This document shows positions 22,501 to 25,500 of a stretch of DNA of 64,000 bases, in pieces (position 1 is the stretch's first letter; every line of letters begins with the position of its first letter). Position numbers and translations under genes: made by a program. The DNA is from Gracilinanus agilis (Eukaryota), in contig NC_058130.1 of the NCBI RefSeq assembly GCF_016433145.1, positions 673,035,104 to 673,099,103 of the forward strand. Reading direction: 5' to 3'. The notes beneath the pieces are model-generated. The model was not told where the DNA came from and did no database searches. It saw nothing but the letters and a program-made list of their open reading frames with translations.

Positions 22501-25500
22501 TCTGTATTATTAGTCTTGGGATCTTTCCCACAAGCAGTTATTAGGTGAAAAAGAAAAGGAGGTTCATCTACCACCTCTGACTTTTTAGCAGTTGCTTCCT
22601 TCAACCCTGGTTGTTGTGGCTCTACAATTTTGGGGGAGGGGTAAAGAGTCCAGCGATGTATTTTATCCTTTGATACATTACCACTCTTTCCACTCATCTT
22701 AGGTACTATAATTTCTGCTTGCTTAGAGGTTTGACTTTCAGGTTGCTCAGAAGTGCTGAAGTCAAGTAAGCCCTCTGAAGGAAGCTTATCACTTGTAAAA
22801 TCTAATAGGTAATCATTATCATCTTTAGTAGGACCTCTATTCTCTTGCCTTTGCCGTGTATATCTCCCTTGATTATACTTATTTAATTTATTAGATTTCT
22901 TGTTCCATAACATGGTCATGTCATCAATTTGGCAGTTAGAATTCCTGTTTCTCCCAGGCTGAAATATGTCTCCAGGGCCACTATAATTCCAACTTTTTGT
23001 ACCTCGTGCCTTGGATTGCCAGTTTCCACTACTGTTGTTCATGTGCCAAAAACCATCTGTTCCTTCAGAATGCCAGTTGGAATTCCTTCCTGTACCACCA
23101 TGATGCCAATCTACTGTTCCATTGTTTGGATGCCAACCACCTCCAGAATTATTGTGGTTGTGATACCAATTTGAAGTTGCCCCTGGACCACTTTTGTGCC
23201 ACCCAGAACGTCCTCTTGGTCCACCACCATTCCTCAAGGAATGTGGAAAGTTATTTTTCCGACCACCATTGAAGCCATCCTTCTCCCACTTCCAATCCCG
23301 CTGAAGTGGTGCACGATGGTGCCACGATGGCTGATCATAAACATCTCTCTCTTGGTAAGCTCCTCGGTCTTCTCTTCGCCACTGTCGTCTGTCATCAGAG
23401 TTTATTTCTTGGCCAGAAACAGATGCTTCATCGACTTTGTTCATTCCTTTGTTTTATTAGCTGAACGAGCTCTTTGTCAAAGTATTCTTCTTCCACCTCT
23501 TCTTCTTTTCCATCTTCTTCTCTTTCCTGAGCATCAACATTATCCTTGTGAAACTGGCTGGAAATATGTTTTGCATAAGCTGACAAGCCCACCACTGTCA
23601 CCCGGCACACCCGGCACTCATGGTCACTGTCCCTTCCCTTCAAGTTTTCAAGTTCTCTATGATGCAGCATGCTCCGCACATGTTCATTCATTTCCTTTTT
23701 TGAGCTGTATACAGTATGACACAATATACATTTTCGTTTTCGTACCATAGTGACTGGAGCAGAAGACTTCACTTGCACTCGACTTCCTTTACTCCATCGC
23801 ACCGCCGAGGCCCTGGCGAGGAGGGCCTCACCACCCCCGGCCCTGGCCTCCTGGTGGGGTCTGGTGGCCCGCTCCCGGACCCTCGCTCCCCGCCGGGCCC
23901 TGCAGCCGCCGCCCTCAATGCCATATTTCAATAGTTAGACTGTGGCCCTCTCCTGGCCTGAGGGACCCTAGTCACATAATATGAGGAAAGGCAGCAAAGC
24001 CAAAAGGAGAATCTCTCCCAAATCTCAAAGCAGCAGGTAAATAGCAAAGTTCCTGGGATAACTAGCTCAAATTTCCATGTTTTAGTGTTCTACGTATACC
24101 AGGATCAGATGAAAAGAAATGTTTATATTTGAGAAGAGAAGACCTGCTTGAGGGTGGACTAGGAGAGCTGTGTGCAGGTACTGAAAGAACTGTCTTATGG
24201 AAAGGGATTACCTCAGTTATTCTTGGCCCCAGAGGACTCAACTAGAAGCAATGAGGAGAGATGCTACAGAGGCAGATTTCCATTTATATATGGAAATATC
24301 TCACAAATCAGAGTGGTTTGAAAGTTGACAACATATGTAAAGTGCTTTGCAAACTTTAAAGAGCTCTACAGGGGTGGCTAAGTGGCACAATGGATAGAGT
24401 CAGGAGGGCTCAAGTTCAAATATGGTCTCAGACATTTCCTACCTGGGTGGCCCTTGGGGAAGTTACTTAATTCTGCCTACTCCTCACTCTTTGGTCTTAG
24501 AGTTGTGACTAAGACAGAAAGTAAAAATAAATAAAAAGATCTCTATAAATGTCAGCTCCTACTGGATTCTTTAAGAAGGGACCACTTGTCATGAGTGTTC
24601 AGTCTGTTCAGGTTAAACCAAATGACATTTGAGGTTCCTTTTCATTGAATCAACAAATTTTGTGCTTCTTTAATGTTGGACAAATTTAAGACTGATGTGA
24701 AATGGAGTCATACAATCTTTCCTGTCATGACACTTGGGCAAAGCTAATTAATGGATGGGATACATGCTTTTCATCATAAAATATAGTAACAATTTAAGGT
24801 TTACAAAGAACTTTCTTTTTCATTTAAAAAACAAATGAAAAAAACCCTGAAACTCTTACCTTCTATTTTAGAATTGATACTAAGTATTGGTTCCAAGGCT
24901 TAGGGTTTAGGGTGAGGCTACTGAGATTAAGTCACTTGCCCAGGGTTGAACAGCTAGGAAGTGCCCATGGTCACATATGAACCCAGGATACTCCTACCTC
25001 CAGCCCTGGTCCTCTAGCTACTGAGCCACTTAGCTGCCCCTATGAAGCACTTTATTTCTTTTTATTTTTTTTAAATCTTTATCTTCCGTTTTAAAATTAA
25101 TACTGTGTATTGGTTCCAAGGCAGAGGAGTGGTGAAGGCTGAGCAATAGGGGTTAAGTAACTTGCTCAGGGTCACACAGGTAGGAAGTGTTTAAGGTCAG
25201 ATTTGAACCTAGGATCTCCAGTCTTTAGGTCTGGCTCTCAATCCACTGAGCCACCAAGTTGCCCCAAAAGCACTTTCTTAAGAACAAACCTGTCAGGGAA
25301 GTCATTCTGGATGAGAAAGATGTAACAAATGATACATAAAACCAAAGTGATGCTGCAGTATATGAAGAGTAAGTTGGCCAAAAGTTGCTTAACACAGTGA
25401 AAATAAGTCATTCAGAGACTAATATATTTAATAGCAACACTAAGAACTTCCTGTGGCCAACACTTGTTTTTTCATAGCAACAAGAAGGGAACATTAATGA

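Follow-up and report, generated by a model that had tools for sequence, protein, structure and literature searches.

A ZNF106 retrocopy in the opossum Gracilinanus agilis whose single frame break probably records a tandem 3' splice site

Splice variants can survive as fossils in processed pseudogenes and other retrocopies (Shemesh, Novik, Edelheit & Sorek 2006, PNAS 103:1364, as cited in PMC5470649 and PMC7290577). The ZNF106 retrocopy described here resembles such fossils in that the exon joints of a single mRNA are preserved in it, in this case probably with a shifted acceptor. The cases of Shemesh and colleagues are reportedly, for the most part, exon skipping and larger events, in human. 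The present copy differs from them in that it is found in a didelphid marsupial, in that the shift would amount to 5 nt and disrupts the reading frame, and in that it is the sole disabling feature of the copy.

The tandem 3' splice sites form another related group. Two AG dinucleotides less than 12 nt apart compete at the second splicing step, the preceding base deciding between them (PMC1431707). Tandem sites that disrupt the frame are numerous, weakly used and suppressed by nonsense-mediated decay (NMD), their use being raised when NMD is off, and minor acceptor sites are mostly situated downstream of the major site (PMC8055015). The ZNF106 junction is similar to the NAGNAG and other tandem acceptor sites (TASS) of that catalogue in having two AGs less than 12 nt apart behind one pyrimidine tract, with the minor, exonic site downstream, where its use deletes bases from the mRNA. 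It is unlike NAGNAG in that the spacing is 5, not 3, so that the reading frame is disrupted and runs at once into a stop, and in that use of the minor site is deduced from DNA.

The break also resembles the small, microhomology-flanked deletions of pseudogenes, being a loss of 5 bp between two GA dinucleotides in an unconstrained copy. Deletions of that type differ from the ZNF106 break in that nothing should direct them to an exon's first base or make AG their last two letters. The retrocopy is a clean new example of known phenomena and contains nothing new in principle. If the single "disabling mutation" was present from the birth of the copy, scoring it as decay would slightly overstate both the age and the mutational load of the retrocopy. 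Before an indel next to an exon joint of a retrocopy is called a mutation, a tandem splice site should be looked for at that joint. Here DNA alone predicts a concrete, unannotated splicing event of ZNF106, namely the use of an acceptor at +5 followed by an immediate stop.

The retrocopy and its locus

The window is a stretch of 64,000 nucleotides of the G. agilis genome, and all of the features described below are situated on its minus strand. Two open reading frames were considered, ORF1 (23931..23428) and ORF2 (23444..19938), the latter having 1168 codons and opening with MNKV. A word search with ORF2 gave marsupial ZNF106 proteins as the top matches. The nearest parent protein is ZNF106 of G. 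agilis itself (XP_044521039.1; P0121), which is 97-98% identical to the copy and aligns with it gap-free: 1135 of 1155 residues are identical in ORF2 and 103 of 106 in the coding part of ORF1, with zero gaps in either. The ZNF106 of Monodelphis is only 95% identical to ORF2. When ORF1 was compared with Pfam, only weak matches to C2H2 fingers were found. Zfp106 has been studied in mouse for neuromuscular degeneration.

The body of the processed retrocopy, including its A-run, extends over positions 18831..23914. An AATAAA signal is located at 18860-18855, and the A-run (18840-18831) lies 14 nt past it. The body is bordered by two copies of a 12-nt target-site duplication, ATATGGCATTGA, the upstream copy at 23915..23926 and the downstream copy at 18819..18830. 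The parental G. agilis ZNF106 gene spans about 73 kb for a product of 1913 residues and thus has introns that are missing from the copy.

The copy can be divided into segments derived from individual parental exons. The exon 1 segment (23633..23914) contains the 5' UTR and the first 38 codons, with the start ATG at 23748-23746. The exon 2 segment (23432..23632) is 201 nt long, encodes 67 codons (DSDHEC...NEQS plus CG) and corresponds to the piece that is skipped in a Monodelphis isoform. The exon 3 segment (21235..23431) is 2197 nt long; its 3' end is the AG at 21236-21235, and exon 4 begins with GTTTGG from 21234. The joints between exons 1 and 2, 3 and 4, and 4 and 5 are gap-free when compared with the parent protein. 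The exon 3/4 joint is accurate to a single base: the window has ...TTACCCAG/GTTTGGCATAGAG (21235/21234, the slash here and below marking the splice point), and the eutherian counterpart has the donor CCCAG/gtgtgt and the acceptor cttaag/GTTTGGCATAGAA. The exactness of this joint indicates that the copy reports splice joints faithfully.

The surroundings of the copy belong to another gene. An exon of strumpellin (WASHC5) is located at 27273..27413 (Pfam PF10266, profile positions 965-1011 of 1084, E = 1.8e-8), 3.4 kb upstream of the retrocopy and on the same strand, showing that the locus is unrelated to the parent. With its introns gone, its joints seamless, its target-site duplication, A-run and AATAAA signal in place and its locus unrelated to the parent, the feature is an L1-mediated processed retrocopy. 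The AATAAA of the retrocopy stands in the sense orientation within the WASHC5 intron and could serve as a premature poly(A) site for WASHC5.

The frame break and the parental exon 2/3 boundary

The minus strand around the break reads ...AGG AAT GAA CAA AGT CGA TGA AGC ATC TGT.... The last codons of ORF1 are CAA AGT CGA, followed by the TGA stop (23428..23430), which arises directly at the shortened junction (CG/A TGA). The homology to ZNF106 picks up at GAT GAA GCA, from 23432 downward (GAT being 23432-23430), in a frame that is displaced by 1 base. The sequence-only reading had described these same two ends within 23428-23445; both are read directly from the letters, and the break does lie inside that interval. 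The break is situated between 23431 and 23432. The G at 23432 is the final base derived from exon 2, the A at 23431 is base +6 of exon 3, and 5 nt that should stand between these bases, ACAAG in orthologues, are missing. As a result, the full-length frame of the copy is lost at codon 107.

The size of the loss follows from the protein. The G. agilis ZNF106 protein reads QSRQDEAS across the break point. The copy keeps the CG and the AT that flank the break and the parent protein requires CGN CAR GAT, and hence exactly 5 nt (N-CAR-G) are absent. The earlier statement that exactly 5 nt are missing is thus borne out by this requirement together with the gap-free alignment to the parent protein. 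The loss can be placed in three indistinguishable ways, as GACAA, ACAAG or CAAGA, and is flanked by a 2-nt direct repeat (GA...GA). When the missing 5 nt are counted back, exon 3 has 2202 nt, or 734 codons, consistent with in-frame rodent isoforms that skip exons 2 and 3 (P0186-P0191).

The parental boundary was examined in orthologues by a word search with window positions 20943-23432 of the minus strand, which matched Logan genomic ORFs whose intron-derived residues continue into those of the big exon (such as ...NCFSS-R-QDESSNSSQE). Three eutherian contigs among them are non-human: the best identities are 99% to Equus and 98.5% to Ursus, the remaining contig is rodent-like, and identity to the human protein is at most 84%. 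In all three the big exon starts as ...yyyCAG/ACAAG/ATGA, the first bases of exon 3, ACAAGATGA, following a pyrimidine tract and CAG, and a second AG is found five bases into the exon. The acceptor reads ...ctgtttttcttccag/ACAAGATGAATC in the horse-like contig (L001), ...ctgttcttctcccag/ACAAGATGAACC in the bear-like contig (L002) and ...ctgtttttctttcag/ACAAGATGAGCC in the rodent-like contig (L003). In L001 and L002 exon 2 is located about 2.9 kb upstream of exon 3 and ends in ...CAAAGTCG/gtragt, the donors being GAACAAAGTCG/gtgagtaatg and GAACAAAGTCG/gtaagtaatg, respectively; the exon 2 donor of L003 lies beyond the contig.

The same intron is present outside the mammals. Two sauropsid contigs, L004 (...ttgttttgtag/GCAAGTTGAAC) and L005 (...gtctttatag/GACAAGTGAAGC), have an intron at the same codon and in the same phase. 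An AG at +4/+5 is found in one of these two sauropsid contigs (GCAAG), and ACAAG in all three eutherians. Moreover, genomic ORFs of many vertebrates show an Arg right before exon 3. This Arg can only be formed by the AG of the intron together with the first base of the exon, and intron phase 2 is thereby fixed.

Protein isoforms of Monodelphis agree with this arrangement. Isoform X1 (P0130) reads NEQSR-QDEASV, and UniProt entry A0A5F8GZM5 (P0001) reads LENLKGR-QDEASV, lacking exactly 67 residues. The skipped piece is a 201-nt cassette exon (window positions 23632..23432) whose 3' boundary lies within the Arg codon that precedes Gln-Asp-Glu, or adjacent to it. An intron so old and so fixed in phase can safely be assumed to be present in the opossum parent. 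The parent protein of G. agilis (R-Q-D) allows ACAAG at this place, the letters themselves being taken from orthologues only.

The sequence-only reading had supposed a parental intron directly after ...AGT CG. This is the position found in the orthologues, as CG/gtgagt in L001 and CG/gtaagt in L002, with the same place and phase in the two sauropsids and with the Monodelphis skip in agreement. The earlier reading had also given the conserved message as CAA AGT CGA CAA GAT GAA. The spliced eutherian message is indeed CAA AGT CG/A CAA GAT GA, the letters ACAAG being seen in the three eutherian contigs only. A parent with no boundary after AGT CG, or with no ACAAG there, would speak against a splice origin of the break; both the boundary and the letters are present in the orthologues, and both findings favour that origin.

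Origin of the break

When the canonical exon 2 donor is joined to the AG at +5, the product is CAAAGTCG followed by ATGAAG, which matches the retrocopy letter for letter. The proposal that an acceptor 5 nt downstream yields exactly the sequence of the copy is thus confirmed as far as these letters are concerned. The break falls exactly on the exon-exon junction and corresponds to an AG at +5, which supports the overall interpretation of the earlier reading, a captured alternative 3' splice site and not decay. The break in the retrocopy is probably a captured tandem acceptor, frame-disrupting and a predicted target of NMD.

The events leading to the copy may be pictured as follows. A ZNF106 mRNA from the Gracilinanus lineage would have been reverse-transcribed, in the manner of L1, into an intron of WASHC5. 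In this template, intron 2 would have been cut at the normal donor (...CAAAGTCG/gt) and at the second acceptor AG (...yyCAG/ACAAG/ATGAAG), 5 nt inside exon 3. The result would be a frame-disrupting tandem alternative 3' splice site, the CG/ATGAAG joint putting a TGA in frame at once. The parental form would be a target of NMD, hence rare, and the retrocopy would keep it as DNA. The frame break would then have been born with the copy, not acquired later.

A different history is that a normally spliced mRNA was copied and that 5 bp were deleted after insertion, by slippage or by microhomology-mediated repair between the two GA dinucleotides. Two nucleotides of microhomology at a break are seen in many small genomic deletions, and for an unconstrained copy about one small indel is to be expected over 3.8 kb under neutrality. 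This history nevertheless demands a coincidence. By our own estimate, in which the roughly 5.1 kb of the copy hold no fewer than four joints, the probability that a small deletion placed at random both begins at an exon's first base and has AG as its last two letters is about 2e-4 to 1e-3; for sites limited to those with a 2-nt microhomology the value is a few per thousand at most. Put differently, the deletion would have to hit one of some 4-6 junctions in 5.1 kb in just this manner, a coincidence of about 1 in 1,000 to 1 in 5,000, and there is no second indel anywhere in the copy to accompany it. A deletion after insertion is accordingly held to be unlikely. Minor use of a neighbouring AG at the 0.1-3% level is commonplace. 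The likelihood ratio in favour of a splice origin is roughly one to two orders of magnitude; the final odds were set lower because the fit to a splice joint rests on the letters of orthologues and not on those of the G. agilis parent.

The evolution of the remainder of the copy bears on the same question. Amino-acid changes polarised with Monodelphis over 1217 codons (window positions 20100 and above) comprise 19 that are specific to the copy, 3 specific to the parent and 47 specific to Monodelphis. The copy and the parent differ, among other places, at codon 66 (window position 23553) and codon 132 (window position 23360). By these counts the copy is younger than the split between Gracilinanus and Monodelphis. 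It also changes about six times faster than the parent, as neutral sequence would, and purifying selection on its frame was not encountered. The roughly 26 substitutions in 3.65 kb lead one to expect about one stop and 1-4 indels under neutrality, so that finding none or one is unremarkable. The sequence-only reading had drawn attention to the lack of any further disabling mutation in about 3.8 kb of coding sequence. That count is correct, there being 0 stops and 0 indels apart from the one break, and it is unremarkable in so young a copy: the lack of other disabling mutations is no sign of selection and is ordinary for a young copy.

Many of the 19 copy-specific changes are of the CpG-transition type: R to W, R to C, R to Q (twice), E to K (twice), D to N (twice) and V to I or M (window positions 20135-23739). 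Such changes fit the neutral decay of a methylated intronic insert.

The 5-nt gap might also be an assembly artifact or a variant private to the animal that was sequenced. Errors of long reads are mostly single bases in homopolymers, and the break site is not a homopolymer. Either an assembly error or a private variant would, in addition, need the same coincidence with the exon boundary, and this explanation is considered extremely improbable.

The parental +5 form and the second reading frame

If the break was captured from a splice variant, the parental sequence is expected to show a pyrimidine tract, an AG and then A-CAA-G-ATGAAGCATCTG. We infer that ACAAG also stands in the G. agilis parent and that the spliceosome there occasionally chooses the AG at +5. 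This site would depend on the Gln codon being CAA, since the codon CAG in its place would abolish it. According to the standard rule, a stop more than 50-55 nt upstream of an exon joint triggers NMD. The TGA precedes the next exon joint by about 2.2 kb, and the parental +5 form should therefore be an NMD target and rare. The distal site is an AAG behind a strong proximal CAG, for which low use is to be expected.

These properties are also relevant to a variant of the splice origin in which no standing isoform exists, the template having been a one-off splicing error or the product of a germline allele with a weakened proximal AG. An AAG, such as the distal site, is the weaker type of site (PMC1431707), and tandem sites that disrupt the frame are mostly considered to be noise (PMC8055015). 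On the other hand, the conserved Gln-Asp codons fix the AG at +5, so that the opportunity for its use is always present, and the data here do not separate a one-off error from regular use at a low level. A splice origin of this kind, from an error or an aberrant allele, is judged quite improbable.

Word searches with the exon 3 piece and with the coding part of ORF1 did not yield a product of 106 residues, the expected mark of the +5 form, and no marsupial genomic or transcript contigs were among the matches. A literature search found no publication linking ZNF106 to an alternative 3' splice site, and the examined supplements of the tandem-site catalogue (PMC8055015) contain no entry for ZNF106. 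Reading on into intron 2 gives CGG TGA or CGG TAA (L001:139-150, L002:108-119), that is, QSR followed by a stop, the same protein end as that produced by the +5 acceptor. Because retention of the intron and use of the +5 acceptor share this end, protein ends cannot separate the two. Dozens of Logan gene calls that end in QSR (within P0161-P0184) are simply genomic ORFs of exon 2.

A shift of the exon 2 donor was considered as another source of the break. The eutherian motif GTCGGT would permit a 4-nt shift, but ...AAAGTCG is complete in the copy, which leaves the acceptor as the only site that can have moved. In eutherians exon 2 ends in ...CAAA GTCG/GTRAGT, a tandem donor of the GYNNGY type (L001:139-152, L002:108-121), for which a donor shift of 4 nt is conceivable; the retrocopy used the normal donor.

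The ATG that opens ORF2 is located at 23442..23444, within the AAT GAA that encodes Asn-Glu of ORF1, and shares the frame of exon 3 only when the 5 nt are missing. The eutherians have AAA GAA (Lys-Glu) and no ATG here (L001:121-147, L002:95-119), and the G. agilis and Monodelphis proteins read Asn. One might imagine that a change from Lys to Asn in marsupials (AAA GAA to AAT GAA) made an ATG 12 nt short of the exon 2 donor and that the +5 form is a regulated mRNA with two ORFs. It would encode a 106-residue zinc-finger peptide and, by reinitiation at the ATG overlapping the region of the stop, a ZNF106 without the N-terminal fingers, and the 1168-codon ORF of the retrocopy would be a copy of that layout. 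This idea is highly speculative and very probably wrong.

Exons 2 and 3 are both symmetric, in phase 2, and annotated isoforms skip either exon 2 alone (KGR-QDE, in opossum and human) or exons 2 and 3 together (in several rodents). What ZNF106 loses by the skipping is its second zinc finger or the greater part of its disordered middle region (P0001, P0012, P0186-P0191). Three JGI fragments, P0158, P0163 and P0180, look primate and may be human. In P0180 exon 2 is followed by an unrelated, repeat-like insert and then by exon 3 in another frame, an arrangement that resembles an exonised repeat in a primate transcript.
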